This document shows, piece after piece, positions 16,901 to 55,900 of a DNA stretch of 64,000 bases. Both the position numbers and the translations under genes were made by a program. Source of the stretch: Macrostomum lignano (lineage: Eukaryota); contig NIVC01001574.1 in the NCBI GenBank assembly GCA_002269645.1, positions 1 to 64,000 on the forward strand, written 5' to 3'. Below the pieces are notes generated by a model. That model saw nothing but the letters and a program-made list of their open reading frames with translations. It made no database searches and was not told the DNA's origin. The number at the start of each line of letters is the position of its first letter. Position 1 is the stretch's first letter.

Positions 16901-18546
16901 GCTGTTTAGGGGTGGCTGTTTAGGGGTGGCTGTTTAGGGTGGCTGTTTAGGGGTGGCTGTTTAGGGGTGGCTGTTTAGGGGTGGCTGTTTAGGGTGCTGT
17001 TTAGGGGTGGCTGTTTAGGGGTGGCTGTTTAGGGGTGCCTTTTTAGGGGTGGCTGTTTAGGGGTGGCTGTTTAGGGGTGCCTTTTTAGGGATGGCTGTTT
17101 AGGGTGCTTTTTAGGGGTGGCTGTTTAGGGGTGGCTGTTTAGGGGTGGCTGTTCAGGGGTGGCTGTTTAGGGTGCTGTTTAGGGGTGCTGTTTAAGGTGC
17201 TATTTAGGGTGCTTTTTAGGGGTGCTGTATAGGGGTGGCTGTTCAGGGGTGGCTGTTTAGGGGTGCTGTTCAAGGTGCGGTGCTATTTAGGGGTGGCTGT
17301 TTAGGGTGCTGTTTAGGGATGGCTGTTCAGGGGTGCTGTTTAGGGGTGCTGTTTTGAGGGCGCGGTTGTTTGTGAAGCTCTTAGAAATGTACCATTAGGC
17401 CACTTTTCTATCTTTAAGCATCTTGCGATCCCACAGCAGCTTGAATGCCAGTTTTTATCGCTATGAAAGATATCCTCACACTGCACTTTAATCACCAAGC
17501 CTCTCTCCTGCTTTCTCCCATGGCCAGAAGCCGAGCTCAAACTGTCAACCAAATGCAGCGGGACTCAGCTGACGGTTCACGGTGAGTTCTGCGGCTGGAA
17601 AAGAGGATAGCGGCACACATCAAAGAGAATCGGGGTAGCGGCACATCAAAGAGAATCGCGGTAGCGGCACATCAAAGAGAATCGCGGTAGCGGCACATCA
17701 AAGAGAATCGGGGGTAGCGGCACATCAAAGAGAATCGCGGTAGCGGCACATCAAAGAGAATCGCGGTAGCGGCACATCAAAGAGAATCGCGGTAGCGGCA
17801 TATCAAAGAGAATCGGGGGTAGCGGCACATCAAAGAGAATCGCGGTAGCGGTACATCAAAGAGAATCGCGGTAGCGGCACATCAAAGAGAATCGCGGTAG
17901 CGGCATATTAAAGAGAATCGGGGGTAGCGGCACACCAAAGAGAATCGGGGGTAGCGGCACATCAAAGAGAATCGCGGTAGCGGCATATTAAAGAGAATCG
18001 GGGGTAGCGGCACACCAAAGAGAGTCGCGGGTAGCGGCACATCAAAGGGCTCTCTAGCAGTGCTGATAAATGAAGTTTTGACATCGTATTTTCAATTTCT
18101 GCTCAAATTAATTCCGAACCATCACACTCGCTGCTTCAGTGATCGAAGCCAGAAACCTGCGCTCCGAACGGGGTCGCAAGTGCAGCAGCTTCGTCAGGGT
18201 GAGTGCTGCTCATTGATCGCTGATTTCAGTTCCAGATTCTATTTATCCATCTTCTCACTGTCAGCGGTCCTTGGCCTGACCTGCCGCTCCGCCCCGAACC
18301 CTGCAGGTGAGCTTCTGCCCCGAGAGCCGGCGGGGCGGTGGCGAGAAGTGCCAGACCGCCATCGTGCCCGACACGGACTTCCCGCTGTTCGACCGGCGGT
18401 TCACCTTGAACTTGCCGCCACCTGCGGCTGGAGAGGCCGGTTTTGCCGGCAAGAACTTGCTGGTGTCCGTGTGGAACCAGCTGGACCGAGAGGGGTGAGT
18501 CAATGAGATATATAGATAGTTAGTTAGTTAGTTAGTTAGTTCGTTC

Positions 18547-18834: not shown

Positions 18835-21034
18835 CTGACCATTCTCCCACTCAATCCCCACGCAGATTTTCAGAATTTCTCGGCTGTCTCACGTTTCCCC
18901 TGGACGGATTGGTGTCGACCAGCAAGGTGCGCTGCTTGTTGATACTACTGACCACTAGTATGCAATAGTAGTATAGCTAGAAAGTCGAGCATGTTTAATA
19001 ATTGGAGAGGGGAACCGTTCCAGCCAAACGCCTGGTACACCTTGATGAACGAGATGACTAGGACTGCTCAGCAGCCGCAGCCGCATCCGCAGCCGCCGCC
19101 GCCGCCGCCGCCGCCGCCTCAACGCCCATCGACGCACTCCGCTGGCAACGGCTTCGACCTGAAGTCGGTGTTGATCCGCCGTCCGCCTCGCAGCGGCCTC
19201 GGCTTCACTGTGTCCGGCTCAGCGCCCTGCCACGTCAGCAAGGTGGAGCGCCGCAGCCCGGCGGACGCTGCCGGAGTCCGCGCCGGGGACTACATTGTCA
19301 GCGTCGACTCTGTCGGCGTGTTTCACGCCAGCAACGAGGTCGTGGTCCGCCTGCTGCGCGGCGGCGACGCAAAGGTGCGGTTGGAGCTCGGCCGGCCGCG
19401 GCCGGTGGCCCGCAGCCCCAGCCTGCCGCTGAGCCGCCCGCCGCTGCCGCCCGCCAGCTTGCTGCCATCGGCGGCCACGTCGACGGCGCTGTCCGCGGCT
19501 GCCACCGCCGTTGCAGTCGAGGGTGGCGGCGGTGGCGGCGGCGGCATCCGACGGGATGTGAAGTCGCTCTACGATATTGTGAGTTGGGCCGGCAGATATT
19601 TGAAACCAGCATCAGATATTACTTTTTTCGATTAATAGGCCAATTAAGTGAGGTGGGTACTGGAAGGAGGGAGTGAGGTGGGTGCTGGGAGGAGGGAGTG
19701 AGGTGGGTGCTGGGAGGAGGGAGTGAGGTGGGTGCTGGGGGGAGGGAGTGAGGTGGGTGCTGGGGGGAGGGAGTGAGGTGGGTGCTGGGGGGAGGGAGTT
19801 ATGTGGGTGCTGGGGGGAGGGAGTGAGGTGGGTGCTGGGAGGAGGGAGTGAGGTGGGTGCTGGGAGGAGGGAGTGAGGTGGGTGCTGGGAGGAGGGAGTG
19901 AGGTGGGTGCTGGGGGGAGGGAGTGAGGTGGGTGCTGGGAGGAGGGATTGAGGTGGGTGCTGGGGGGAGGGAGTGAGGTGGGTGCTGGAAGGAGGGAGTG
20001 AGGTGGGTGCTGGGAGGAGGGAGTGAGATGGGTGCTGGGAGGAGGGAGTGAGGTGGGTGCTGGAAGGAGGGAGTGAGGTGGGTGCTGGAAGGAGGGAGTG
20101 AGGTGGGTGCTGGGAGGAGGGAGTGAGGTGGGTGCTGGGAGGAGGGAGTGAGGTGGGTGCTAGGATGAGGGAGTGGGGTGGGTGCTGGGAGGAGGGATTA
20201 AGATTTAGATTAAGAAAGCAATAGGTTCGCGTTGCAACTTTGGTAGCTTCTGAAGCAGTGTCTAGGACCTTCACTTACAACTTCATTCCAGTCCAGTTCG
20301 GTGCCCTCTAACCCCGCATCAGCCGCTCCGAGTCCATTGCAACCGCAGCCACAGGTGGCGCCAACCCCAGGTCCGCACCTGCACTTCTCCCACAACAACC
20401 GCATCTTCTGCCGCTCCCTCTCCTGCCTGTCGCATTCCGGCACGGTCTCGCTGGTAGAGTCCGGCCGCCTCACTCTCAGCCAGGCGTTCCTGTTCCCCGA
20501 CCTGCTGCTGATGGCGCGGCCGCGGTTCAGCGCAGATCACGAGCCGCTGACGCTGGTTCGAGAGCCGATTTGCACCCGTAAGATCGTCTGCTGCTCTGTG
20601 CCGCAGGGAGCGCCATGTGAGTATCTGAGTTTGCTGCCTGAATTCATGAGAGAGGTGGGTGATAGACAATGGTCGGGAGTGAGGCAGTTGAGGGTAGAAA
20701 TTCGGAGTGGGGTGGGTGCTGGATAATGGTCGGGAGTGAGGTGGGTGAGGGGTAGAAATGCGGAGTGGGGTGGGTGCTGGATAATGGTCGGGAGTAAGGT
20801 GGGTGAGGGGGGTAGAAACTCGGAGTGGGGTGGGTGCTGGATAATTGCGGGGAGTGAGGTGGGTCTTATCTTACTAATCGTATTCCCCTTTTCAAACCAG
20901 GCGAGGTCTGCCTGCAGTTTGTCGGACGCGGCGGTCGCAAGGAGATGCTGAGGCTGCGCTGCTCCCACGAGCTGGAGAGCCGGCAGTGGTGCCGCAGCAT
21001 CCAGCAGAAGCTGCTCAAGGCCCTGGTCTTCTGA
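13935..21034 (+). CDS. RGS3-like C2-PDZ-PH protein with no RGS domain (~577 aa). Exons 13935-14253, 17528-17581, 18140-18198, 18307-18494, 18866-18926, ~18985-19578, 20292-20616, 20901-21034
   Basis: C2: AELKLSTKCSGTQLTVHVIEARNL...CSSFVRVSF...LLVSVWN...SEFLGCLTFPL...WYTL. PDZ: GLGFTVSGSAPCHVSKVERRSPADAAGVRAGDYIVSVD. PH: FLFPDLLL...W-x3-I. Splice phases are compatible. The start codon and the exon-6 acceptor are uncertain. Confidence 0.8.
14325..14735. repeat. 33-bp tandem repeat (intronic)
   Basis: Unit caacatcaagaatgagaagtatagaatggattt. Confidence 0.95.
15400..17350. repeat. 14-bp G-rich minisatellite containing TTAGGG
   Basis: Unit tttaggggtggctg over ~1.95 kb, inside intron 1 of the RGS3-like gene. 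Confidence 0.97.
17605..18050. repeat. 26-27-bp tandem repeat (intronic)
   Basis: Unit agcggcacatcaaagagaatcgcggt. Confidence 0.95.
18515..18835. repeat. (TTAG)n microsatellite (intronic)
   Basis: Seen directly in the sequence. Confidence 0.97.
19650..20195. repeat. 25-bp G-rich tandem repeat (intronic)
   Basis: Unit gtgaggtgggtgctgggaggaggga. A related longer unit recurs at 20645-20865. Confidence 0.93.
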
Positions 21035-21966: not shown

Positions 21967-24900
21967 ATGCGACTGTGGCTCACTCTGGGCCTTCTGCTGG
22001 CCACCGTCCTGCCAGCAACTGCCAGCAGCGACTTCGGCGCCACCTGCTCAGCTGTGGACTCCTTGGCTCGGCTCGCTGAGTTCTTCGCCAGGAACTCGCT
22101 GAAGATCGACGCCGACGGCTACTTTGGAGCCGCCATCGCCTTCCTGACCTTCGACTCGGCGCCCACCAGCTCCAGCGCTACGGAGCGTCGAGTTGCAGAT
22201 CTGTGCGGCGACGCTCAGGCCGCCGAGCTGCGTCGAGCTGTCGATCAGCTTCGACAAGTGCTGGTCGATTTTCGAGCTCGAGTAGGCGGGAAGAAGTCGA
22301 GAAGCGGTGGAGACTATGATGTTGAAACCTACTGGGGCATTTGCCGGCCTATGGAGGCTGTGATGCGGCGGCTGCTCAGTCAGAGGCGGTTTCGCTGGCG
22401 CTGGCTTGAAGACTCGGGACATCACGGAGCTGCGGTAGACGCTAAGCAGGCTCAGGCTTGGCTGAAGTCCTTGAAGAGTCGGTTGGTAGAGTACAATGAG
22501 CCCAGGGGCGACGCGTGCTTCAGGAGGATGTTGGCGAGTAGAAAGTGGAGGTGAGCGCTTGCTGATGAGGTGTCAGGCAAGTAGTGGAGGTTTCAGGCAA
22601 GTAGCGGATGTGTCAGGCAAGTAGTGGAGATGTCAGGCAAAGTATGGAGGTGTCAGACAAAGGATGGAGGTGTCAGACAAAGGATGGAAGTGTCAGACAA
22701 AGGATGGAGGTGTCAGACAAAGGATGGAGGTGTGAGACAAAGGATCAAGGTGTCAGACAAAGGATCAAGGTGTCAGACAAAGGATCAAGGTGTCAGACAA
22801 AGAATGGAGGTGTCAGACTGAACAGTACCAGAAAGTACGTTAAAACAACTACCGTAATTCGCTCCCCTCTACTCTGCTTCAGTCGTTCAGCCAGCTGCTC
22901 CGCCTCATCAGCCTGCAGGCGGATGTTTCTCAGCGCCGAGCCCAACAAGGGCTACGCCCTGACGCACCAGCTGATCTACTGGGCCGCCTCCATCGATGTG
23001 AGTTAACTCCAAATCCCAAGGTTCAGTAAAACATGGAGAAACATGGAGGGAGATAGTGGCATATAAATAATGCTTAGGTCTCGAGTGCATCCATTTTCGC
23101 CTCGAACTGGCACTCACTGCAGCGCAACTGCCACCTGAAGCTGTCCGATGGTCGGCCAGTGGACCGGGCTCTGCTGTCCGGCGCCTGTGGCCGAGTCCTG
23201 TCTGAGCACCGCCACATCTTGGCGCTGAACTCGCCAAGTAGCACCCTAATTGACTTGGCCTTGGAGCAGGGTGAGTCCCGCAATTGCAACCAGCGTTGAA
23301 GCAATTCTGCCCATGGATGGCTGTACACACTCACACACTGGCTGTTTTTGACATCCCTGCAATCGATCTTCTCGCTTCCAATCCAAGAGTTCAAGGGTCC
23401 ATGCTCTCTTGAAACTCCAAGTGTCCTTGGATGAAAACTTCGCCAGATTAGTTGATTGGTCGGTCGCGTTACCCCTGCTCTGACCACCCCTTAACTACAG
23501 CTGTCATCTGCGGCTCACTGGGCTACCGGGACTTCTTCACGGACTCGACCTTGCTACTCCTGCGCCGGCTGCAGGACGAGAGGCTGGGCTGCATCCCTGA
23601 GGAGATCGCGGCGTCAGTGACTTGGAAAAATGCCACGGTATTGCCGGGACGAAGGCTCATGCACAACACGGTGCTGAACGGTGAGATCTGGAGCTCTGCC
23701 AGCAGCCAGTCATTAGCTCCCAGTCAGTAGCTGGTCATTAATCTACAGTCAGTAGCTGGTCATTAACCTACAGTCAGTAGCCGGTCATTAACCTACAGTC
23801 AGTAGCTGGTCATTAACCTACAGTCAGTAGATGGTCATTAACCTACAGTCAGTAGCCGGTCATTAATCTGCAGTCAGTAGCTGGTCATTAACCTACAGTC
23901 AGTAGCCGGTCATTAACCTACAGTCAGTAGCTGGTCATTAACCTACAGTCAGTAGATGGTCATTAACCTACAGTCAGTAGCTGGTCATTAACCTACAGTC
24001 AGTAGATGGTCATTAACCTACAGTCAGTAGCCGGTCATTAACCTACAGTCAGTAGCTGGTCATTAACCTACAGTCAGTAGATGGTCATTAACCTACAGTC
24101 AGAAGCCGGTCATTAACCTACAGTCAGTAGCTGGTCATTAACCTACAGTCAGTAGATGGTCATTAACCTACAGTCAGTAGCCGGTCATTAATCTGCAGTC
24201 AGTAGCTGGTCATTAACCTACAGTCAGTAGCCGGTCATTAACCTACAGTCAGTAGCTGTTCATTAACCTACAGTCAGTAGCCGGTCATTAACCTACAGTC
24301 AGTAGATGGTCATTAACCTACAGTCAGTAGCCGGTCATTAACCTACAGTCAGTAGCTGGTCATTAACCTACAGTCAGTAGATGGTCATTAACCTACAGTC
24401 AGTAGCCGGTCATTAACCTACAGTCAGTAGCTGGTCATTAACCTACAGTCAGTAGATGGTCATTAACCTACAGTCAGTAGCCGGTCATTAACCTACAGTC
24501 AGTAGCTGGTCATTAACCTACAGTCAGTAGATGGTCATTAACCTACAGTCAGTAGCTGGTCATTAACCTACAGTCAGTAGCCGGTCATTAACCTACAGTC
24601 AGAAGCCGGTCATTAACCTACAGTCAGTAGATGGTCATTAACCTACAGTCAGTAGCCGGTCATTAACCTACAGTCAGTAGCCGGTCATTAATCTGCAGTC
24701 AGTAGCTGGTCATTAACCTACAGTCAGTAGCCGGTCATTAACCTACAGTCAGTAGCTGGTCATTAACCTACAGTCAGTAGATGGTCATTAACCTACAGTC
24801 AGTAGCTGGTCATTAACCTACAGTCAGTAGATGGTCATTAACCTACAGTCAGTAGCCGGTCATTAACCTACAGTCAGTAGCTGGTCATTAACCTACAGTC

Positions 24901-32764: not shown

Positions 32765-35700
32765 ATGCGGCACTCGCAACTTCTAGCGGTGCTAGTGGCG
32801 CTGAGCATCGCCTTGCACGGCGCGCAGGCCGCGAAAGGCAAGAAACCTGACGTCGCTCAGTACCAACAGGCTGCAGACGCCGTCGCTTCGAACGTCAACA
32901 AGGCGGCCGAGAAGTCTGAGCAGCTGGTCAACGAGCACATGTCCGCCGTTAATAAAGACCCTGGCGCGCTCATCACAAAGGATACCATGAAGAACATGAT
33001 GGCCGGGAGAACGTTCCTGCCGCAGAAGGCCGGCAGTAGAACCGTTTCGGTGCAGGCTAACCAGGGTTTCAACGGACTTACAAACTACCAGCCTTCCGGT
33101 TGGAAGATTACGGAGACCATGAGCGGTCCAACGGACAAGAAAGATGAGCCAACGGCAGCAAAGGAACCGGTGTACACCTATCCGATGGGCCTGGGCCCTG
33201 TTCTCATGAACCAGTGCACGGAAAGAAGCTACGAGAAGTCCAGCCCTTGCTACAACAGCAAACTGTTTGATCTGCAGAACAAAGTTTGTCAAAACCAAAT
33301 TGACGCGGCCAACTACATCGGCGTTGGGTTTGACGGCAGAGGCTACTACAACGCTCAGAGCAGAAAGGCCAGTCTGGTGCAGCGATCCTGCGCCAACAGG
33401 GCCACCTTTATGGGGCAGGACATTCCGGACACGATGAATATATTTGGCATATTCGAGACAGTGGCAGAGACGAAATCCTTCCAGTCCGCCAGCCAGTACA
33501 TGCGCTACATCCGGCACAAAGCCGGCCTGTCAAACCAGAAGAACCTGTTCTCTAGTGAGGCCAGCAAATACTCAAAGGGCAGTTCATTTGGAGCCAACCT
33601 CGGAGGAATTGGCGCCATCGTTGGTGGAGCCATCGGTGCAGTAGCCGGTGGGCCTGCGGGGGCAGGAATGGGAGCACAGCTGGGAGGCGCCATCGGAGGC
33701 TCTATTGGTGGTGGCAGCGGCTCAGGGTCCGGAAACTCCAAATCAAAACAAAAGGGACAGAGCTCATCGAAAATGATGCAGAGTGAGAAGGCAAAAGCAA
33801 GAAAGGGTTCTACTCACAGCTTCTTTGCGATCATGTATGTCAACGTGATCCTGTACGACATCAGCCTGGACGAAATCAAGCCCAACGACGTCAGTCTCAA
33901 CGTTCTAAAGGACTACATGAATCTTCCCGCATCGTACTATTCCATCGGGGCCGATGTGAAATACCAGAACTTCCTTCTGCGATGGGGCACCCACTTCATC
34001 CGGTCGGGTAAGTTCGGCGGTCAGCTGAAGATCACGAAGACGTCCAAGACCAGCAAGATCCAGTCGCAGGAGCAGTTCGCGCGTATTGCCGAGACGGAGT
34101 TTCAATCCATGTTTGCCACTTTGCAGTCCAGTTACACCCAGAAATCCAGCGGCTGGTCTTTCCTTGGTTTTGGTAGCAAGAAAAGATCGACATCTCAAAA
34201 ATCTTCAGCAAAGTCAAAGGCGGAGCATAAGAGCACGATGAGTGCAGGGCAGTCACAGTCCGACAGTTCCAAACAGTCTCAGTTTACTCAAACTACAGTC
34301 GAGGCTCAAGGTGGAACTCCCGAGATCGCCGAAGCCCTGGTTGACTTTTACACTCCTGCATTCAAGCAGCTGTATCACGACTGGCTGGTCTCGATCAAGG
34401 ACTACGCAAAACCCTTCGAGTTCCAGCTCAGAGCAGTTGATGAGATTTTCAACATGAATATGGACGACTTGTTTCCTGGAGGCAAAGTTGACTTCGGCTG
34501 TGTTGGAGGTGACAGCAGCAAAGTGAAAATTCTTGTGGAACCGGAAACGAACAGACGTTACTATATCGACGTGAGGACGAAATTCGACAACTCAAGCAAA
34601 TTTGAACAGAAAGTGAAAGTATATTGCAAGTACTCACACCTTGAAGACTTCAAAGAAGACCTGAACAAAAGAAGGATTTCTCTGGAGAGGGCCATCGGTG
34701 TGTACATGGCCGAGGGCCCATTTCCGACATCGTCATTCGAGCTGAAGGCCGGAGAGCCAGGCTGCGAGGAGGCAACGCTGGGAACAGTCAGCGCTTCGAT
34801 GGCGTCAAAGTCCAGAGTGATGAGCTATGCAGAGCTGAAAAAGTCGCCATTCCTGATCGCGTTTGATCTGCCGCAGCCCGTGCCGAATCTGATCGCCATG
34901 AAAGCAAAGTACCGGATTATCTTCAAAGACGGCATTTGGTTTGCCACTGAGCCCACGCAGACGTCCATGCACTTGTACGACGGTTGCGAAATTTCAGAAT
35001 CCACGGAGGCCAGGATCTGCTTTAGAAACATAATGCTGAATTATGATGAAAAGACAGGCCTTCTCCGTGTCGATCCAAGAGTTTTCCCGATAACCAAGTC
35101 TCGCATTCCATCGCTGCCGGAGTGGCTGTCTGGGTCCATCGTAGCCAGGGCTCACAGACTGGAAATGACTAAAAGCATCAAGGCGGACGTTTTCAGCGGC
35201 CGAGCGGCCCTGCCGTGCAACATCCGATGGCTCAACTCTCACCGACTTGACCCAAAGAAGCAAGAGAACTGCATTCACTTCACCGCTGCTAGCGAGGGCG
35301 ACATCTTCGTGATATTTTCCGCTATTCCTAAAGACCACACTACATGGTACTACCTGCAGATCAACTCCGAAGGTGTTTCCTTCTATCAGGGTCTAAAATT
35401 GAGAAAGCGGGACGTGCAGAAAGGAATGGGAATTCTGGGAGACAAGAACCTGTTCCAGTCCTTCTTCGTCTGCGTGATACAGAGCTCTGGCACGGTGATG
35501 ATGCAGTACGGCAAAGCTGACCCGGAGAGCGAGGTCGGCACCGTCTTTTCCGGCTACACCTTCGCCCGCGACAGCCAGTTCAGCAGACTGTCGTTCTACA
35601 CCTTCGGCTCCGGTTCCAAGGAAGTCTCGCTAATGGACATCCGACTCACCAGGACTATGCCGAAGGTGGAGTGTCTGAGCAAAAATTACAAAAAGGTGAA

Positions 35701-38606
35701 GGGCCACTGCGTGTTGAAGTGTCACGCAGAGTGCATCAACTGTGATGCAGCAAACGACAACAAGGCCTGTCACCAGTGCAAAAATGTCCGTGTGGAGACG
35801 GGAAAAGGAGCTATTAAAGTGATCGAGTGTCTCTCCAAATGTCCTGCTGGGAAGTATGTAAGTCAAACTAAAAAAAGGTTGTGTGTTCCGTGCCTGGCCG
35901 GAACATTCAAAAGCGGCAAGGGGAACGAGAAATGTGCATCGTGTCCAGCGGGATCGTTCAGCTCTGCCGGGGCTACAAAGTGCTCCAAGTGCAAACCGGG
36001 CACGTTTAACGCTAAACCAGGCCAGTCAAAGTGCACCAAGTGTTCCGGTGGGACTTTCTCCGGCAAGGGAGCCACGGTGTGTCAGAAATGCCCGCTCGGA
36101 AGCTTTTCCGGTGAAGGCCAGCAAAAATGTTCGCCGTGTCCTTACGGTCACTACGGAGACTCGCAAGGGCTGAAGCAGTGCAAGCCGTGCTCCAGAGGCT
36201 TCTCGGCAGCAAAGAGGGGCCAGGTAAAGTGCACCAAGTGTCCTGCCGGTACGTCAAGTGTGGAGGGCTCCAGGACTTGCAGCAACTCGTGCAAAAAAGG
36301 CGAGTATAGTCCCGCGAAAGGTCAACCATGCAAAAAGTGTTCTCCAGGTACATTCTCCGAGAGTGCGGGCTCGATGAAGTGCTCGCAGTGCGCCCCAGGT
36401 TCATACCAGCCCAATGGGGGGCAGTCTGTATGCATCAAGGCTCCAAAAGGCACGTATGTATCACAAAGAGGAGCAAGAAGTTACCAAAGCTGCCCTGCTG
36501 GTACAGTCAACTCTCAAGTAGGACAGGCGAACAGCTCTGCCTGTCGAAAGTGTCCTGCTGGAACCTTCAGCAGCTCGACAACTAGCTGTAAAAAATGTCC
36601 TGTTGGTCAGTTTTCGTCAGGCTCTGGTTCCCGAGCTTGTTCGAGATGTCCCAAGGGTCAGTATGCTCCAGTCGAAGGGATGAAAGGATGCAAGCATTGC
36701 GACCTGGGCACCTACGCGCCGAATGAAGGATCTGCGGTCTGTAAAATTGCACCACAGGGGACCTATGTTTCAAATAAAGGCTCTATAAGACCCATAAAGT
36801 GTCCCGCCGGACATTATAACGCGAAAGTTCGTCAGTCGAGCAGTTCCGCTTGCCTGCCTTGTCAGAAAAACTATTTCGCTCCATCGAGTGGGTCCTCCAA
36901 GTGCAGAAAGTGCAGTGCCGGTAGCGTCACGGCCAAAACCGGCTCCACAAGGTGTGCCAGCTGCCCAGCGGGATCCTACGCCCACTCCAGCGGCTCTTGC
37001 CAGTACTGCTCACCCGGAACCTACATTTCGTCTACCGGAGCGGCTTCCTGCAGCAAGTGCAAGGCTGGCACATTCGCGCCCGGCCGAGGTTCGAGAAACT
37101 GCAGGCCTTGTTATGCAGGCTCGTTTTCGAATGCCGGCTCGTCGAGATGCACGCAATGCTCTCTGGGCTACTACGCTCCGTCATCAGGATCGAGTCGTTG
37201 TATGAAGTGTCCGTACGGGTCCATCGCTACGAACGCTCAGCGAACCAAGTGCTACAGTAAGTTTTGGTGTCTTGTGTTTGCTTATTTTCAGAATCAAGAA
37301 AGGATTGTGCCAATGGGTAGCTACTTTAGTTAGTGCTGCAAACAGGGAATATTTATTATAGCCATTTTCCAAACCGAAATTCAACTTCAAGAATTTTTTG
37401 TTGGTTTTTTACCAATAACGATTTTTATACAGAACGTGGGCTTTTGTAGTGCATTTACACAGTAAGCGTGCGCCTTGTGAGTGTACAGACTATTACGTTA
37501 GACGCGTTATGGAAGCATTGAAGAAGTTAACCTACTCGTATGCATCAAGAGGTTCACGCACCCCTCAAATCATAAGTTACGTTTTTAATCGCTCTTGTTG
37601 GTCGTCTCCTGCACCCCACAGAGTTTGGCGAGTGCTACTTCGCTAATAAGAACTTCGTCAGTACTTCAGTGAGCCGCACAAAGAGCTCCAAGCCGTGCCA
37701 GAGCTGGACGGTTCGTTATTGTTCCTGGCATACGCTGAAAAGGACCTGCCACGTCCCCAACCCTACTGCGAAAGCGTCCCAATCCACTGGCAACACGTGC
37801 CGAACCTTCACGGAGCAAGGCGGCTCGAACAAGCCGTGGTGTTACACGAAGACTTCGACTCGATGGGAACTTTGCAACATTCCTCTTTGCGGACCCAGTG
37901 AGTACATCATAGTGGCCAGCTAGTGGATGTACTTTTTAGGTGTGGCCGGTGGGTTGTCGTGCGATTCGCAGCCATGACGGCCAACCCCCAAGGCACAGAA
38001 AGTGTACATGCCTGACGATTAGAAAGTCAGGGCCGCTGTACACCTGTGTGAGCGCGTGTGAGTGCGCAACACATATCGCTTTCCATTCCTGTAGCAATCA
38101 TTAACAGGCTGCCGATATGGACTGCCGATTGCTAGCATCAAAAAGGAGAAATTAACGCTGGAGGTCAGTGAGCGAAGCTTGAATCTTGAGCATTGGCTAT
38201 CTGATTGGCTATGACGCTGACAATTGCAAATGAGGTTTCAGTAGACTGGCTCGTACAGATAGAACCTCTTTTCGCTAAGTAAAATAGATTAGAAATCATG
38301 TTCGGCAGTTCTTTTACTCTTTTAATCTGTGTTGCAGGACTGCGCGAGTGCTACAACAAAGGCACGAAGAACTTCGTGTCGGGCATCGCAGTGACCCGGA
38401 GCGGAAAGCCGTGCCAGGGCTGGGAGATCAAGAGCTGCCCCAGCGGCACAGTGGGGAAAACCTGCCACGTGCCCAACACTGCTCTGAAGCTGGCCCGTCT
38501 GATTGGAAACACCTGCCGCATCACCACTGCCAGCAGCGAGAAGCGTCCGTGGTGCTACACCAGGACGTCGAGGAGATGGGAAACGTGCAACATTCCACAG
38601 TGCTGA
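32765..38606 (+). CDS. Secreted MACPF protein (~1,678 aa): signal peptide, MACPF with Gly-zipper insert, beta domain, furin-like and GCC2/3 (ephrin-receptor-like) Cys-rich repeats, two kringles. Exons 32765-37256, 37622-37897, 38338-38606
   Basis: Signal MRHSQLLAVLVALSIALHGAQA. MACPF signature FLLRWGTHFIRSGKFGG (33983-34021), plus YIGVGFD and terminal EAQGG. About 25 CxxC-x-x-G-(T/S)-(F/Y) units. Two CY...PCQ.W...N.CR...PWCYT...RWE.CNIP.C kringles joined by phase-1 introns. Confidence 0.9.
37940..38075 (+). mobile_element. SINE body copy in MACPF intron 3
   Basis: ggccaaccccaaggcacagaaagtgtacatgcctgacgattagaaagtcagggccgctgtacacc. Confidence 0.7.
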
Positions 38607-41410: not shown

Positions 41411-41697
41411 TAGTCAAACTGATTTACAACTGATTATCAATGAACAATTAAATTTCTAAGCACTGGAGATGAATGGGAAGGAGACAAACTGAAAATGGCT
41501 AATTGGGTAAAACTGAAAAACTCGTTTCCACTCCAGGTGCTAATTTATAGAACTCCTTGCTTGTGTCCCATTTTGGTTTGAGAAAGTATACAAAACAACC
41601 CCTGGCCAGCGACCATAGAGGATTCCTTGAGACCATGAGAGCAGACCAGCATCACTCACACAGCGTTGGGAGCGCAGCCAGAAAAGAGGCAGAAGGC

Positions 41698-44536
41698 ATG
41701 CACTATTGGGAGATCCTGCAACTTCTGACTCTTCTTCTGTTGCCAACCTATCGAACTGCAGCCGCCAGCGTTGAGAATTCTGGCATGATTTGTGCAGCAG
41801 CTGACTCGCTGTCTCGGCTGGCTGAGCTCTTCGCCAGGAACTCGCTGAAGATCGACGCCGACGGCTACTTTGGGGCCGCCGTCGCCTTCCTGACCTTCGA
41901 TTCGGCGCCCGCCAGCGCCAGCGCTACGGAGCGTCGAGTTGCAGATCTGTGCGGCGACGCTCAGGCCGCCGAGCTGCGTCGAGCTGTCGATCAGCTTCGA
42001 CAGGTGCTGGTCGATTTTCGAGCTCGAGTAGGCAGTAAGAACCCGAGAAGCGGTGGAGACTACGATTTTGAAACCTACTGGGGCATTTGCCGGCCGCTGG
42101 AGGCTGTGATGCGGCGGCTGCTCAGTCAGAGGCGGTTCCGCTGGCGCTGGCTTGAAGACTCGGGACCTCACGGAGCTGCGGTAGACGCCAAGCAGGCTCA
42201 GGCCTGGCTGAAGTCCGTTGAAAGATTGGTGATGAGGTACAATGATACGATGGGCGATGCCTGCTTCAGCAGATTGTTGGACAGTCCAAGCAAAAGGTGA
42301 GTCTTCAGCGACCTGTCAAGATGAAGGGTGATCAGGAGTTTGACTCTGGCAGTATTAACTGGTAAGAGCTGAAAAAGTTTGATTTCAACTGCTTGAACTT
42401 TAGGTTTGTAGAATGCTTGGATTTTTTATGCAGCTTTTTGCCCAAGATTTTTTGAAGTTGCAACATTCCTGTTCGAGAGGTCTAAAGAAGGTGCATTTCG
42501 TGTTAGGTGGAACATGAGATACGGCTGTAGATTCAGCAATGGTCGCTGCATCCAAAAATTATCTAAAGACGACAGAATTATGTAAACCCAGTGGGGCCTT
42601 TGCATAAATAATAATATGATGACACATTGAGCACGCGAATTCGCTTCAGCCGCTCATCGCCCTGCCAGCCTCCGCCAGCATGCAGGCGGATGTTTCTCAG
42701 CGCCAAGCCAAGCATGGGCTACGCGCTGACGCACCAGCTGATCTACTTGGCCGCCGCAATCGATGTGAGCCAGACTCTTTATCATGGTCCCGTTTCCATA
42801 GCCTAGGATTTCCCCATATTGCAGCGATCTCGGGATGCCCCGCACTGCAGCGCTCCTGCCACCTCAGACTGTCCACCGGTCGGTCAGTGGACCAGTCTCT
42901 GGCCGCCGAGGCCTGTCGGTCTGCCCTGGCAGAGCACCGGAAAATTCTGGCCTTGAATTCGGCTGGCATCGACATGATTGACCTGGCATTGGAGCAGGGT
43001 GAGCATACTTGAGACCTAGAACACGGTTGGCGGTTGTAATTTTTACCTGAGTATGGGAAAGTCAGGGCCGATGTACACTCTGTGTGAGCGTGTTGCCGAG
43101 TAGGCATGGCATTAACATTCCTCAGTTTTACTAACTAATCAACTAACATTTAGGGCTTCAAAAAGGAGTAACTACTGGAAACACGAAGAACTTAGCTACC
43201 CGATGCTTGAAGAAGCTGTCTGCATTATGAAAATATGAAAACTATCTTTATTGCTTCGCCGTGTTGCAGCTTTCATCTGCGGCTCTCTGGGCTACCGAGA
43301 CTTCTTCACCGACTCCACTCTGCTGCACCTGCGCCGGCTGCAGGACGAGAGGCTGGGCTGCATCACTGAGGAGCTCAACTCGCTCAGCACTCGGCAAACT
43401 CTGCCGGCTCCCACTGGACGGAAGCTCATGCACGAAGTGATGCTTGATGGTGAGTCCCGAGTACTGAGTCCCGAGTACTGAGTCCCAAGTCCCGTGTCTC
43501 AAGTCCTGAATCCCGGGTCCTGAGTCCCGAATCCGGAATCATGAGTCCTGAGTCCCGAGTCCCGAATCATGAGTCCTGAGTCCCGAATCATGAGTCCCGA
43601 GTCCCGAGTCTCGAATCATGAGTCCTGAGTCCCGAGTCCCGAGTCTCGAATCATGAGTCCCGAGTCCCGAGTCTCGAATCATGAGTCCTAAGTCCCAAGT
43701 CCCGAATCATGAGTCCTGAGTCCCGAGTCCCGAATCATGAGTCCCGAGTCCCGAATCATGAGTCATAAGTCCCGAGTCCCGAATCATGAGTCCTGAGTCC
43801 CGAGTCCCGAATCATGAGTCCCGAGTCCCAAGTCTCGAATCATGAGTCCTTCGAGTCCCGAATCATGAGTCCTTCGAGTCCCGAATCATGAGTCCCGAAT
43901 CATGAGTCCCGAATCATGAGTCCCGAATCATGAGTCCCGAATCATGAGTCCCGAATCATGAGTCCTGAGTCCCGAATCATGAGTCCCGAGTCCCGAATCA
44001 TGAGTCCCGAGTCCCAAATCATGATTCCCGAGTCCCGAATCATGAGTCCCGAGTCCCGAGTCTCGAATCATGAGTCCTTCGAGTCCCGAATCATGAGTCC
44101 CGAATCATGAGTCCCGAGTCGCGAATCATGAGTCCTGAGTCCCAAGTCCCGAATCATGAGTCCTGAGTCCCGAGTCCTGAATCATGAGTCCTGAGTCCCG
44201 AATCATGAGTGCTGAGTCCCGAGTCCCGAATCATGAGTCCCGAGTCCCGAGTCCCGAATCATGAGTCCCGAGTCCCGATTCCCGAATCATGAGTCCGAGT
44301 CCTGAGTCCCGAATCAGGCGAGTCCTGATTCCTGAGTCCCGAGTCCACAATTAATGACAGTCGTTAACAATCCATGGACCCTTGAGCAAAATTGAACTCG
44401 TTCTTTGTGTCACATTGTCAATCGGATTCAAATTCAAAACGCAAATAGGACTCACTGTACCTTTTCAGGAGCCTGCTCGTCCCACACCAGCGGACTGACT
44501 GCTGTCTATTTGTCGCTGTTTCTAAGAGGCTCCTGA
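41698..44536 (+). CDS. UPF0764/C16orf89-like secreted protein, paralogue B (369 aa). Exons 41698-42296, 42650-42764, 42851-42998, 43270-43449, 44469-44536
   Basis: Internal exon sizes (115/148/180) and phases are the same as paralogue A. Motifs GYALTHQLIY, IDLALEQAFICGSLGYRDFF and CSSHTSGL. Confidence 0.82.
43450..44345. repeat. 7/14-bp composite minisatellite starting at the splice donor
   Basis: gtgagtcccgag... followed by (gagtcccgaatcat)/(gagtccc) units. Confidence 0.93.
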
Positions 44537-46777: not shown

Positions 46778-47810
46778 ATGTGCTCTGTAAGTGTGCTCAA
46801 AGCGGCCATCCTGCTGCTCGCTGCCCTCCATCCTCTCGCCGGAAACGTGCCAGCTGAGAGAACGTGGCGGCTGAGCCGAGACGGCCTGGCCGACTATGAG
46901 GCTGATGCTTCGTTTCCGGCACTGAGCGACATTGACTGCATGGCAACTGCAGGCTCGGACCCCGCTGTGCAGCTGGTGACGTTCAGCGCCAGCTCCGGCC
47001 TGTGCGCTCACTTCAGGTGTCGCCTGGGCCTGAGCCACTGCAGGAAGTGCCGCGATGCGAACAAGGGAGCTCAGAAAGTGTGGGTGAGTCACTCAGTTCG
47101 ATATTTCAAGCGTTACGGTGGCTTTAACACAGAAAATAATAACTGAAACACCTGCGTCACCTTGCAGACAACCGGCAGTGACTGCTGGACCACCGTGCAG
47201 CACAGGGTGTCCGGCTCAGTGGACTTTTACCGCAACTGGACTCAGTACCAGAGCGAGTTCGGCGAGGGACCCGACGGAAACTACTGGATCGGTGAGTGCA
47301 TCCCGGATCTGCTCCATTCGCTTCCTCTCCAACTCGGACTTCAATGACAAACACCGCCATGACGTCCGCATCTTCCCAGGCCTGAACTCTCTCCACGCTC
47401 TCACTGCTTCTGGTCCTCGGAAGCTGAGGATCCTGATGAAGGCGTGGAACGACTCTGAGCACTGGGCTGAGTACTCCAGCTTCTCCGTGGGTCCCGAGTC
47501 GGACAACTACCGGCTGAGCGTGTCCGGCTTCTCCGGCAGCGCCAGCATCGGCGACGCGATGTCTCCCCAGAGCGGCATGCAGTTCAGCACCAAGGACGCC
47601 GATCACGATACGCATTTCAACGGGAGCGGAAGCTGCGCGACTACCTACATTGGCGCCTGGTGGTTCTCCAGCTGCTTCGCCACCCACCCCAACGGACGGT
47701 ACAGAGACTTATCTTCAGCCATTGGCGGCCCATACGCCCAGGGTGTTATTTGGAAACATCCATTCGGCCATTACTACTCACTGATGGAGTTTGAAATGCT
47801 AGTTTTCTAA
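46778..47810 (+). CDS. Secreted fibrinogen-related (FReD) protein with a Cys-containing, PAN/apple-like N-terminus (286 aa). Exons 46778-47083, 47168-47291, 47380-47810
   Basis: Signal peptide, then [39 protein letters not shown]...[17 protein letters not shown]...[12 protein letters not shown]...SCA...[13 protein letters not shown]. Splice phases 0 and 1 are compatible. Confidence 0.92.
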
Positions 47811-52915: not shown

Positions 52916-55900
52916 TCAGTGAGTCTCCTTGGCCAGCCAGTCCACCTTGGCCCGGCGCAGGTGGTACAGCTGCCTGGCCTCCGAGTACTGCCGGACAAAG
53001 CCGGCCATGTCCAGACTGCCTGTGGCCAGAGCCTCGGCCACCGACTCTGCCTGCTCATCCGCCTCCATGCAGGCGGCCTCCAGCAGGGTGAGCAGCGTGT
53101 CCGGGCTGGCCGCCGAGTTCAGCGACTCCAGCCGGCTGCGCGTTTCCAACAGAATAGCGCGCTGAGCGTCGGCCTCGTCCGACAGCGCGGCCAGGCGGCG
53201 CCGGCTCTCCTCGATGCGCGGCCCCAGGGCGAAATTCAGCTCGGCCGTCTGCCGGTTGGCCGCCATGGCCGTCTGCTTGGCCTGGCCGAGCTGCTGCAAC
53301 TGCAGGGTCGGGGTCTCAGTGAGATCTCTAGCTGAGACTCGCGAGGTGAGAGTCTAGGTGAGTCTGGTTGAGAGTCTAGGTGAGTCTGGGTGAGAGTCTA
53401 GGTGAGTCTGGGTGAGAGTCTAGGTGAGTCTGGGTGAGAGTCTAGGTGAGTCTGGGTGAGAGTCTAGGTGAGTCTAGTGAGAGTCTAGGTGAGTCTGGGT
53501 GAGAGTCAAGGTGAGTCTGGGTGAGAGTCAAGGTGAGTCTGGGCGAGAGTCTAGGTGAGTCTGAATGAGAGTCTAGGTGAGTCTGGGTGAGAGTCTAGGT
53601 GAGTCTGGGTGAGAGTCTAGGTGAGTCTGAATGAGAGTCTAGGTGAGTCTGAATGAGAGTCAAGGTGAGTCTAGGTGAGTCTAGGTGAGTCTGGGTGAGT
53701 CTGTCTGCATGCAAGGCGGGTACAGCACGCCTGTGTAGCATGAGACAGACTAGGCCTACGGGCTAAGGTCTGCGATCCTACACACCTGCACCCCCTCTAT
53801 TCTGGTGCAGGAATGGCTGGAGAACTCTCTCCAAGCTGACTCGCAAGCCGACCCAGGGGTTCACGCCCCGCATGTGTTCAAGGCAGCCCTAGGGCTGCTG
53901 GACTGACTGGGCTCCGGCGGCGGCAACCCATCCGTGGCCTTTTGGCCAAGTTGGGTACGGGCTCCGCCCGGAAGTGAACCTGTGCGTATCAGGTACCTCT
54001 GGCCACGGCTCTGAGGAACAGGTACCACCCTCTGACCTTAACAGGGTATGCGGCCAGTCCGCAGGCTCCGGAGGCAGTCCTCCTGCTTCCCTCAAGGGCC
54101 CAGTGTAGTACCGCGCTGATGGTCCTTTGGTTCGGCCTCTGGTTTTTCCAAGCCGGGCTCCTAGCCGGGGAGTTTCTCGGTTGCTAGCGGTCGGGCCGGT
54201 ACGGGCTTAAGCCACCCCCCGGTCGCTACCTCTTGGCCTGGTTGTTGGGTTTGGGGTTACGGCCCAGCGGCTTCTCACCTTTAGTCCCCACTCGCCTTTC
54301 AGCGACTCATGGAGTATTCATTTACCTCCGACACGTCCGAGGCTGCTGGAGCACCAACCGAGGTTGGCACCGCGGCCCAGCCGGACATTCGCAACACCGG
54401 AACCCCCGGTGCCTCTCAATCTGCCGCTGCAGCCGCTCAGGATAATACCGGAGTGGCTGGACAAGACAGCGGACCTCAGATTTCGAAAAAGAAGGCCCGT
54501 AGCATTGCTCGCTACAAAGCCTTCCTCCAGCGCAAAGCGGAGGAACGGAGGAATGCGAAAGCCGCCCCTCCGGCCACCTCTGAGGAGGGTGCCGGTAACT
54601 ATGCGAACCCCGCGGAGGAGACGACATCCGACAAGGGGGTGGACCCCGCGCGCCGGTCTGATGCGTCAGGTGCCGCCGAAGCTCCTGGTACGGCTGGCCC
54701 CTCCCGTGACCGGACCTCTGCCCGTGTGGAAGCTCCCACGGCCGTGGAGGGATCCAAAGCGGGGGGCGCTGGCCAAACCACAAAGCCGAAGCGAACCTAC
54801 GCGGCTATGGCCAAAAGGCAGCCGGCCCTGGTTATCCAAGGCCAGGAGACGCCTCTTACGGCCGAACAGCTCGATCTTATCTGGCGCAGGTTGGACTCCC
54901 ACCTGGTCAAGATGGCCTTGAGCGGCACTACTATTCGAGTCCAAAAGACGAAAGTCGAGGACCAAGCCCTCTATATCCAGCCCACCGACAGCCAGTCAGG
55001 ACAGCAGCTCCTCGAGCTGCTGAAAACCTTCGACTGGGGTACGGAGCTGGAGAACCTGTTCATCTACAGGGAGGACGAGCGACCCCGGACACACCGGCAC
55101 CGTGCCTGGATCCCGGCTCGCAGCTGCATCACCAAGGCCGACGAGCTGCGTCACCTGCTAGTGGCTTCCAACCCGGAGCTACCGGCCAACGGTGTCGTAG
55201 TTCACGAGACCATCTCCAAGCCGGGCGGAGACGGTTTCACGGCTATTCTTGGACTGTCGGATAGCTGGATGCTCCGCTACCCGGACATGTCCATCATCTC
55301 TGTCGGGCTGTTGCAGATTCAGCTCTTTAGCTTTGAGTCTGACGCCACCCGCCCACCGCCCCCGGAGAAGCGTAAGCGGGCAGTCGGGGGCTCTGCCGGG
55401 CGGAAACGCCCAGGAAAAGAAGCTCCCGGTCGTCACGACCCCTCCGAGGACGTGGACCCTGTCAGAGGGAAAGCCGCGAAAGCTGCAGCAACAGGCGGAC
55501 GTGGAAAGGGCCGGAAACCCGCCCGGAACACTATCCGCTCTGGTCTGACTCAGCGCGCGAAGCAGCTGCTGGACACCGCCAAGGCCCCCAACCGCAGCCA
55601 CCCCCAGCCCAGTGTCACCACTGCGGCCCCCCCGGAAAACCGGGCCGAGAGCGAGAATGCCGCCCAGGTAGCGACCTCTCCCTCGACCATGGAATCCATC
55701 CGGGAGGAGCCCATGGAGCTGGAGCCTGGAGCTATCGGCGAGGCAGAAGAGGCAGCTCTCCTGCACAACTCGCCTTGAGCCGGCAGGAAGCTGCGCGGAC
55801 CACTCGTGGAATTCCCGGAGTGGACATCCTGCAGCTTAACCTGCACCACTGCATCGCGGCCTCGACCAACCTGATGCGGGTGGCAAACTTTGCGAAACCG

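Follow-up and report, generated by a model that had tools for sequence, protein, structure and literature searches.

Animal immunity has its chief pore-forming weapons in proteins with a MACPF domain, and their target is set by the domain that is attached to the MACPF part. The question raised by the locus described here is what such a protein might do when the attached part is a long Cys-rich rod that ends in two kringles. The gene concerned, Mlig022132.g1 of the flatworm Macrostomum lignano, lies on contig NIVC01001574.1 (GenBank assembly GCA_002269645.1); 'the window' denotes the whole stretch that was analysed, positions 1 to 64,000 of the forward strand (64,000 nt). The original prediction, made from the window sequence, had proposed a pore-forming toxin or immune effector with a Cys-rich stalk and a shuffled-in targeting head. 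We conclude that Mlig022132.g1 is a real, intact and expressed gene and that its product is, as judged from the sequence, a secreted, soluble MACPF protein of 1678 amino acids (aa). As the best explanation of the whole we lean, with modest confidence, towards a core that forms pores and a lineage-specific head that provides recognition, the two together acting as an innate-immune or prey/microbe-directed effector. The gene is already deposited and annotated; what is gained here is an interpretation, not a discovery.

Gene structure and copies of Mlig022132

The long open reading frame (ORF) at 32645-37333 has its first ATG at 32765 and is spliced to two short downstream exons (Table 1). The junctions read TGCTACA/gtaagt...cacag/AGTTTGG for intron 1 and GGACCCA/gtgagt...tgcag/GACTGCG for intron 2, and both introns are phase 1, since each interrupts a codon after its first base. 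The resulting coding sequence (CDS) comprises 5037 nt (1678 aa plus stop codon), with a reading frame that is open over both junctions. Its translation agrees at every position (0 differences) with GenBank entry PAA66254.1 (BOX15_Mlig022132g1), a 'hypothetical protein', and the same protein is present in UniProt as A0A267EZ39, labelled 'MACPF domain-containing'. Coordinates, splice sites and the identity to PAA66254.1 thus bear out the earlier proposal of a single 4.5-kb exon to which the kringles are added as two phase-1/phase-1 modules. The GenBank annotation of the assembly (the BOX15_Mlig proteins) was derived from RNA-seq data with StringTie/TACO and a de novo transcriptome, ORFs being called by TransDecoder (PMC5730564); the kringle junctions are therefore supported indirectly by transcripts.

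Further copies allow the gene model to be compared. GenBank copy g2 (PAA55510.1) differs from the window protein at 12 positions, and its genomic locus (L002) is collinear with the window, upstream minisatellite included, with identical splice sites and an intron 1 that is ∼ 2.6 kb longer (L002 14556-17196). The two coding sequences are separated by 34 synonymous and 12 non-synonymous differences, which corresponds to a ratio of non-synonymous to synonymous substitution rates (dN/dS) of 0.11 overall, and of 0.06 for the core, 0.13 for the repeats and 0.23 for the kringles (the last value reflects 8 changes only). Copy g3 (PAA85459.1, P0047, 1251 aa) ends within the Cys-rich repeats, owing to either a frameshift or an assembly error. 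A paralogous locus, Mlig027585.g1 (P0053, 1685 aa), has the same order of parts including two 8-Cys kringles (50.4 bits for the pair in Pfam) and is 68% identical to Mlig022132 over the first ∼ 1030 aa. Between the two, conservation is lowest in the rod (43%); kringles 1 and 2 (K1, K2) are 53% and 63% identical in the full-length alignment and 49% and 64% identical when the kringles are aligned on their own. The MACPF-rod-kringle-kringle design is therefore older than this duplication and has been maintained since. Taken together, the splice sites of g2, the dN/dS of 0.11 and the architecture of Mlig027585 make Mlig022132 look functional.

It could be argued that the kringle exons form a separate downstream gene, or that they are joined to the MACPF part only by rare read-through, and a 182-aa 'kringle domain-containing' fragment in UniProt (A0A1I8HUX2, P0050) does begin within intron 1. 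We regard such an annotation artefact as very improbable. The intron phases are compatible with an open frame over both junctions, g2 has the same junctions, and Mlig027585 has kept the order of the parts at the level of identity given above. MACPF and kringle parts are moreover united in two independent annotations, the second being an older UniProt model (A0A1I8ICT8, P0051). Without the kringle exons, exon 1 would run 25 codons into the intron before reaching a stop codon and would lack a conserved ending.

The MACPF core and its relatives

The N-terminus was assessed by eye. The segment MRHSQLLAVLVALSIALHGAQA is the most hydrophobic 19-aa window of the protein (Kyte-Doolittle, KD, value 1.65) and has an AxA cleavage motif at its end (AQA/A); homologues have a hydrophobic N-terminus as well. 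The signal peptide that had been predicted is thus upheld. Only this segment and the glycine-zipper insert described below yield 19-aa windows with KD > 1.5. There is thus no sign of a separate membrane anchor, and a soluble, secreted protein is to be expected.

A complete MACPF core, likewise part of the original prediction, is supported by three lines of evidence. First, Pfam family PF01823 matches aa 341-563 with 47.5 bits (cut-off 21.5 bits). Second, the MACPF signature (Y/W)-G-T-H-(F/Y)-x6-G-G is found in WGTHFIRSGKFGG (aa 407-419), and a second hinge is provided by QGG (515-517). The WGTHF, FGG and QGG motifs are unchanged in all 23 aligned sequences, from cnidarians to the flatworm, and the alignment contains 56 invariant columns. 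Third, a Foldseek search with an AlphaFold model of aa 1-1032 returned perforin (8.6e-10), C9 and C6 (both ∼ 1e-7), GNIP1Aa, MPEG-1, TgPLP1 and Plu-MACPF; perforin, C9, MPEG-1, TgPLP1 and Plu-MACPF were matched at a probability of 1.00. These fold matches point to a bent central β-sheet with two helical clusters (TMH1/TMH2, for the transmembrane hairpin regions), at moderate model confidence: the mean predicted local distance difference test score (pLDDT) is 59, with ∼ 60-78 in the MACPF sheet and 70-88 in the later domains. By sequence, the nearest solved structure in the PDB is C8 alpha with an E-value of only 0.0017, which places the protein on a divergent MACPF branch.

The two TMH regions differ from those of the relatives. 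In cnidarian family members each TMH segment is ∼ 55 aa long, which is the canonical length, whereas both are extended in Mlig022132 (Table 1). TMH1 carries a hydrophobic glycine-zipper insert (GGIGAIVGGAIGAVAGGPAGAGMGAQLGGAIGGSIGG, beginning with GGIGAIVGGAIGAVAGG), which is common only to the Mlig027585 paralogue (P0002), a Logan-derived Macrostomum-type protein (P0003) and a metagenomic protein (P0006, 34% identity). Paralogue P0004 lacks the insert, as do the homologues from amphioxus and cnidarians.

When aa 1-1031 were used to search 5.8 billion proteins, 46 relatives were found, all with E-values of 1e-56 or better and identities of 27-42%, and many of them aligned over 80-100% of the query. 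Four of the relatives are further Macrostomum-type proteins; the others come from Branchiostoma, the annelid Owenia, the hemichordate Glandiceps, anthozoans (Nematostella, Actinia, Oculina, Montipora, Dendronephthya, Desmophyllum) and, in several cases, metagenomes. What they share is a collinear core of ∼ 1030 aa, consisting of the N-terminal region, the MACPF domain, a linker, a β-sandwich and a Cys-rich module. Behind this core the relatives diverge: according to precomputed Pfam annotation they carry SRCR, C-type lectin, Gal-lectin, F5/8C, chitin-binding, pentraxin, LamG, Furin-like and FN2 domains. The Macrostomum paralogue groups P0003, P0004 and P0005 have a tail of ∼ 130 aa in place of the kringles, which is weakly F5/8C-like in P0003 (E 6e-4) and P0004 (E 0.019). 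From these sequence comparisons, the core is that of an old, uncharacterised metazoan MACPF family with heads that vary between lineages, and Mlig022132 belongs to it. Members such as Branchiostoma LOC144924459, Nematostella LOC116617089 and the Owenia and Glandiceps proteins show 30-37% identity to it, in alignments that take in as much as ∼ 90-100% of aa 1-1031. They differ from Mlig022132 in that no member outside Macrostomum has a kringle, in the short TMH segments of the cnidarian proteins and in the missing glycine-zipper of the cnidarian and amphioxus ones.

Between the MACPF domain and the rod lie three conserved parts. The mixed α/β linker has family-conserved columns, and no Pfam match. 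It is followed by the β-rich domain of ∼ 150 aa that had been noted before; the domain itself is present and is modelled with a pLDDT of ∼ 75-88. The likeness to Methyltransf_FA (PF12248) that had been suggested for it is neither confirmed nor excluded, with weak matches in 3 of 16 homologues (best E 0.0016). The Pfam scan of the window protein gave no match for aa 815-965, Methyltransf_FA included. A search of protein sequences with a profile of this segment retrieved only three short unnamed proteins and missed every known member of the MACPF family described here, which is uninformative; run against PDB sequences, this profile returned nothing. The Foldseek search of the whole model also gave matches of ∼ 145-170 residues to galectin-2, the PRY-SPRY domain of TRIM25 and a legume-lectin-like inhibitor chain. 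Foldseek reports these without query coordinates; we assign them to aa 815-965 because this is the sole all-β segment of ∼ 150 aa that is modelled confidently. On the strength of the model, aa 815-965 probably adopt a galectin/SPRY/ConA-like fold. The third part, described in the original prediction as a furin-like segment, proved to be a family-conserved Cys-rich module; the Pfam Furin-like family is recorded on cnidarian homologues only and not on the window protein.

Among characterised proteins, perforin-1 (MACPF-EGF-C2) and the complement components C6-C9 are the best fold matches of the model, with marginal sequence similarity in the PDB. They resemble Mlig022132 in being secreted, soluble MACPF proteins in which the MACPF domain is followed by a Cys-rich module and a β-sandwich or other binding domain. 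Mlig022132 differs from them by its linker of ∼ 250 aa, the probable galectin-like β-sandwich, a rod of 460 aa, the kringles and much longer TMH regions. Pfam scans of the window protein detected no C2, TSP1 or LDLa domain. An identity with terminal complement C6-C9 was rejected for lack of TSP1 and LDLa modules, and one with perforin-1 because Pfam finds no C2 domain and the fold matches of β-sandwich size are a galectin, a SPRY domain and a legume-lectin-like chain. MPEG1 (perforin-2) is similar in being an ancient invertebrate MACPF immune effector, and MPEG-1 is among the fold matches; its C-terminal transmembrane anchor is, however, absent from Mlig022132. This identity too was rejected, since there is no hydrophobic segment after the MACPF domain, the C-terminus consists of kringles and the PDB sequence search (E ≤ 1) contained no MPEG1 chain. 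The region behind the MACPF domain had no match to a named family, a result that neither reveals a P2 domain nor directly excludes one. Conceptually closest are Pomacea perivitellin-2 (PV2), in which tachylectin and MACPF reside on two disulfide-linked chains, and apextrin (MACPF + ApeC). In both, a pore-forming MACPF module is delivered by a carbohydrate- or pattern-recognition module. The recognition domains differ from those of Mlig022132, as does the chain organisation of PV2, and no homology beyond the MACPF domain was seen. The literature search also returned papers on ApeC (PMC8361754, PMC9585378). M. lignano has been reported to possess 13 copies of MPEG1 (PMC10781884).

The rod, the kringles and the surrounding locus

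The ∼ 25 CxxC-x-x-G units that were proposed for the C-terminal half are real repeats, and their number has to be lowered slightly. We count 23 Cys pairs in aa 1040-1496, 21 of which fit C-x(1,2)-C-x(1,3)-G, together with five single Cys. Ephrin_rec_like (PF07699) matches the region in 14 stretches above threshold (172 bits, E 1.7e-51). From the dimensions of TNFR-type repeats, a rough estimate (not a computed value) would put the length of the rod at ∼ 30 nm.

Such a rod also invites a purely structural explanation, in which the protein is a product of secretory glands (mucus, rhabdites or adhesive), rod and kringles cross-link the secreted material and the MACPF domain is accessory. In Mst1, a mastigoneme protein to which the rod has a weak match (8tx1), Ephrin_rec_like rods make up stiff filaments outside the cell, and the secreted chain of 1678 aa contains 88 Cys. 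The pattern of conservation points the other way: what is conserved across phyla is the MACPF core and not the rod, which is the region that the two Macrostomum paralogues share least. Nor is the gene mentioned in the Macrostomum papers that were searched; the identifiers Mlig022132 and Mlig027585 were not found in their full texts or supplements, and Mlig017717 and Mlig021963 were not found in the part of the Macrostomum supplements that was searched. We consider a gland product improbable.

Both kringles that had been predicted were recovered by Pfam PF00051 over the full 79-position profile, K1 with 27.5 bits (below the cut-off of 34.3 bits) and K2 with 37.5 bits (above it). A joint K1+K2 profile identified plasminogen in the PDB (E 3e-27), as well as kringles of HGF, apolipoprotein(a), prothrombin and ROR. 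When aligned with kringles 2 and 4 of plasminogen (29-40% identity), the six canonical Cys, the PWCYT motif and the WE.C.IP.C motif are present, and K1 and K2 have an extra Cys pair and a 5-residue insertion. The Macrostomum kringles form a subtype of their own, with eight Cys instead of six and the insertion placed before the NxCR motif. The same alignment reveals that the lysine-binding NPD-x-D motif (Asp55/Asp57) is replaced by TFT-E-Q in K1 and ITT-A-S in K2; because this centre is missing from both kringles, binding in the manner of plasminogen cannot be assumed. An AlphaFold model of kringle 2, calculated from a two-sequence alignment, was unusable (pLDDT 44), and the assignment is one of sequence: by that evidence both are true but divergent kringles. 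In contrast to plasminogen, apolipoprotein(a), HGF and ROR1/2, no protease or kinase domain is attached to them.

Where else do these modules occur? The K1+K2 profile retrieved 821 proteins at E ≤ 0.001 among 1.84 billion representatives; the named proteins among the top matches that were looked up are apolipoprotein(a)- or plasminogen-like poly-kringle proteins. Apart from one, the best 150 of the 821 contain no MACPF domain by a hidden Markov model (HMM) of the family, a MACPF-only HMM (E ≤ 10) or the GTH motif. Among the 46 family relatives, kringles are carried by two Macrostomum loci only. The MACPF-kringle combination was thus found only in Macrostomum, and our literature search uncovered neither a characterised MACPF-kringle protein nor a paper that treats the combination. 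To this extent the architecture is as unusual as had been claimed; it is shared with a paralogue, already annotated and part of a family with interchangeable heads. The Oculina patagonica homologue P0023 carries an FN2 domain (PF00040), which has a kringle-like fold, behind F5/8C domains, so the flatworm is not alone in having a head of this fold class.

Outside the MACPF genes, the single kringle nearest to K1 and K2 belongs to M. lignano Mlig034341, which encodes six F5/8C domains and one C-terminal kringle. The latter has the same 8-Cys pattern and retains an NP.D-like motif (L003 7129-7422). It forms a terminal exon after a phase-1 intron, whose position relative to the first Cys is essentially that seen in Mlig022132. 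Phase-1 introns that bound the exons of a module are typical of kringles. The Mlig034341 exon therefore directly supports the shuffling of a Macrostomum kringle cassette, as the original prediction had supposed.

Upstream of the gene, a 23-bp minisatellite of ∼ 35 copies (31708-32506) ends ∼ 260 bp before the MACPF start codon and is kept in g2. Its candidacy as a special regulatory feature was rejected, as the window is packed with similar arrays of 8-36 bp; others are located at 23721-25906 (25 bp x 87) and 15398-17354 (14 bp x 143). Further genes of the window are listed in Table 1. They include an ORF for a fibrinogen C-terminal globular domain, a lectin-type module that is common in invertebrate immunity. 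In copy g2, the MACPF gene is flanked by DUF4735-domain genes (L002 1-3133 and 22018-23288), the downstream one of which aligns with window positions ∼ 41557-43016.

Table 1. Features of Mlig022132.g1 and of neighbouring parts of the window
Feature	Position	Strand	Description
Signal peptide	32765..32830	+	aa 1-22, MRHSQLLAVLVALSIALHGAQA; cleavage before AK; judged by eye
MACPF domain	33296..34444	+	aa ~178-560; WGTHF 407-411, FGG 417-419, QGG 515-517
TMH1/CH1 region	33458..33832	+	aa 232-356, 125 aa, unusually long; low-confidence model
Hydrophobic glycine-zipper insert in TMH1	33596-33724	+	aa ~278-320
TMH2/CH2 region	34031..34300	+	aa 423-512, 90 aa; Ser/Gln/Lys/Thr-rich, GWSFLGFG stretch
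Linker domain, mixed α/β	34445..35206	+	aa 561-814; family-conserved columns; pLDDT ~65-88; no Pfam match
β-sandwich, ~150 aa	35207..35659	+	aa 815-965; all-β, pLDDT ~75-88
Cys-rich (furin/EGF-like) module	35660..35869	+	aa 966-1035; conserved Cys columns C970 to C1026
Rod of ~23 CxxC units (Ephrin_rec_like / TNFR-like)	35870..37255	+	aa 1036-1497
Exon 1	32765..37256	+	4492 nt; start codon to last Cys-rich repeat; phase-1 end at CA/gtaagt
Intron 1	37257..37621	+	GT-AG, phase 1
Exon 2 (kringle 1)	37622..37897	+	8 Cys; both ends phase 1
Intron 2	37898..38337	+	GT-AG, phase 1
Exon 3 (kringle 2 and stop codon)	38338..38606	+	8 Cys
Fibrinogen C-terminal globular domain ORF	47118-47810	+	Pfam E 3.6e-31; ~8.5 kb downstream of the MACPF gene
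Non-LTR (long terminal repeat) retrotransposon	54309-58222	+	second ORF 55775-58222: AP-endonuclease and reverse transcriptase (RVT_1, E 1.3e-31)
PDZ-domain ORF	18991-19635	+	E 1e-10; flanked by minisatellites and a strong GC skew region, 14-20 kb

Proposed role of the protein

The variable heads of the family are mostly classic pattern-recognition or binding domains, so the simplest reading is that the protein forms pores under the guidance of recognition and serves defence or feeding. In the mechanism that we envisage, the core would be the working machine. The β-sandwich adjoining the MACPF domain would dock on the target membrane or on a glycan, much as C2 does in perforin and P2 in MPEG1, and a ring would be built from docked monomers. 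Both helical clusters, TMH1 and TMH2, would then unfold into β-hairpins that form the pore. That this sheet-opening mechanism has been retained is argued by the invariance of the hinge glycines and of the GTH motif. The C-terminal part would serve as a lineage-specific device for recognition or tethering, namely a disulfide-rich rod that bears at its tip two kringles, gained as phase-1 exon cassettes and devoid of a canonical lysine-binding site. Effector specificity would thus be supplied by a swappable head. In its logic, the core conserved across phyla is comparable to the MACPF-EGF-C2 arrangement of perforin, and the β-sandwich is the best candidate for docking on membrane or glycan, or at least as good a one as the distal kringles. 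The length of the rod suggests that the kringles catch or tether a target, or tether the protein to matrix secreted by the animal itself, and that they do not dock directly on the membrane. The function as toxin or immune effector that was proposed originally is putative.

Several observations weigh against a recognition-guided pore former. The MACPF model is only moderately confident, and its TMH regions fall below a pLDDT of 50; with 125 and 90 aa, these regions are also far longer and richer in low-complexity sequence than canonical hairpins. The rod that separates the MACPF domain from the kringles would be awkward if the kringles bound the target membrane, and these lack the Asp55/Asp57 centre. 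Our searches found no expression, localisation or activity data for the gene. Finally, not every animal MACPF protein is lytic; astrotactins, BRINPs and Torso-like are examples of those that are not.

These last proteins are the models for a different account, in which the core would have its role in signalling outside the cell, in adhesion or in organising the matrix, while rod and kringles anchor it to partners in the matrix or on the cell surface. Extended, low-complexity and poorly modelled TMH regions would fit such a role, set against the canonical segments of ∼ 55 aa in cnidarian members and the invariance of hinge glycines and GTH motif throughout the alignment. The heads can be read in both directions: discoidin, LamG, FN2, kringle and pentraxin domains are also typical of matrix and adhesion proteins, whereas SRCR, C-type lectin, Gal-lectin and chitin-binding domains point to foreign glycans and not to self matrix. 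The strong purifying selection on the core (dN/dS 0.06) is compatible with any essential role, and the family is multi-copy with an architecture that varies between lineages, as is often the case for immune gene families. We judge a non-lytic function unlikely, while giving it appreciable weight.

Returning to the recognition-guided pore former, we speculate, more tentatively than for Mlig022132 itself, that the relatives constitute an unrecognised, ancient animal family of 'pattern-recognition-coupled perforins'. Its core of MACPF domain and lectin-like β-sandwich would be fitted in each lineage with other heads (SRCR, lectins, pentraxin, FN2, kringle) by phase-1 exon shuffling, and the rod with its non-lysine-binding kringles and the glycine-zipper would be Macrostomum innovations. 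If this is true, a glycine-zipper within the membrane-inserting TMH1 could alter how the pore enters membranes.

Mlig022132 and its relatives combine one conserved MACPF core with many recognition modules over cnidarians, deuterostomes and a flatworm. The exchange can be seen in the exons of Macrostomum, as phase-1 kringle cassettes that occur both with MACPF and in a discoidin-repeat gene, and M. lignano is a tractable animal for tests, as both RNA interference (RNAi) and transgenesis exist. Should the family not be lytic, a large and old branch would be added to the poorly understood non-lytic MACPF proteins. Should it be lytic, it would represent an invertebrate counterpart of lectin-guided killing and a natural experiment in the retargeting of pore formers.

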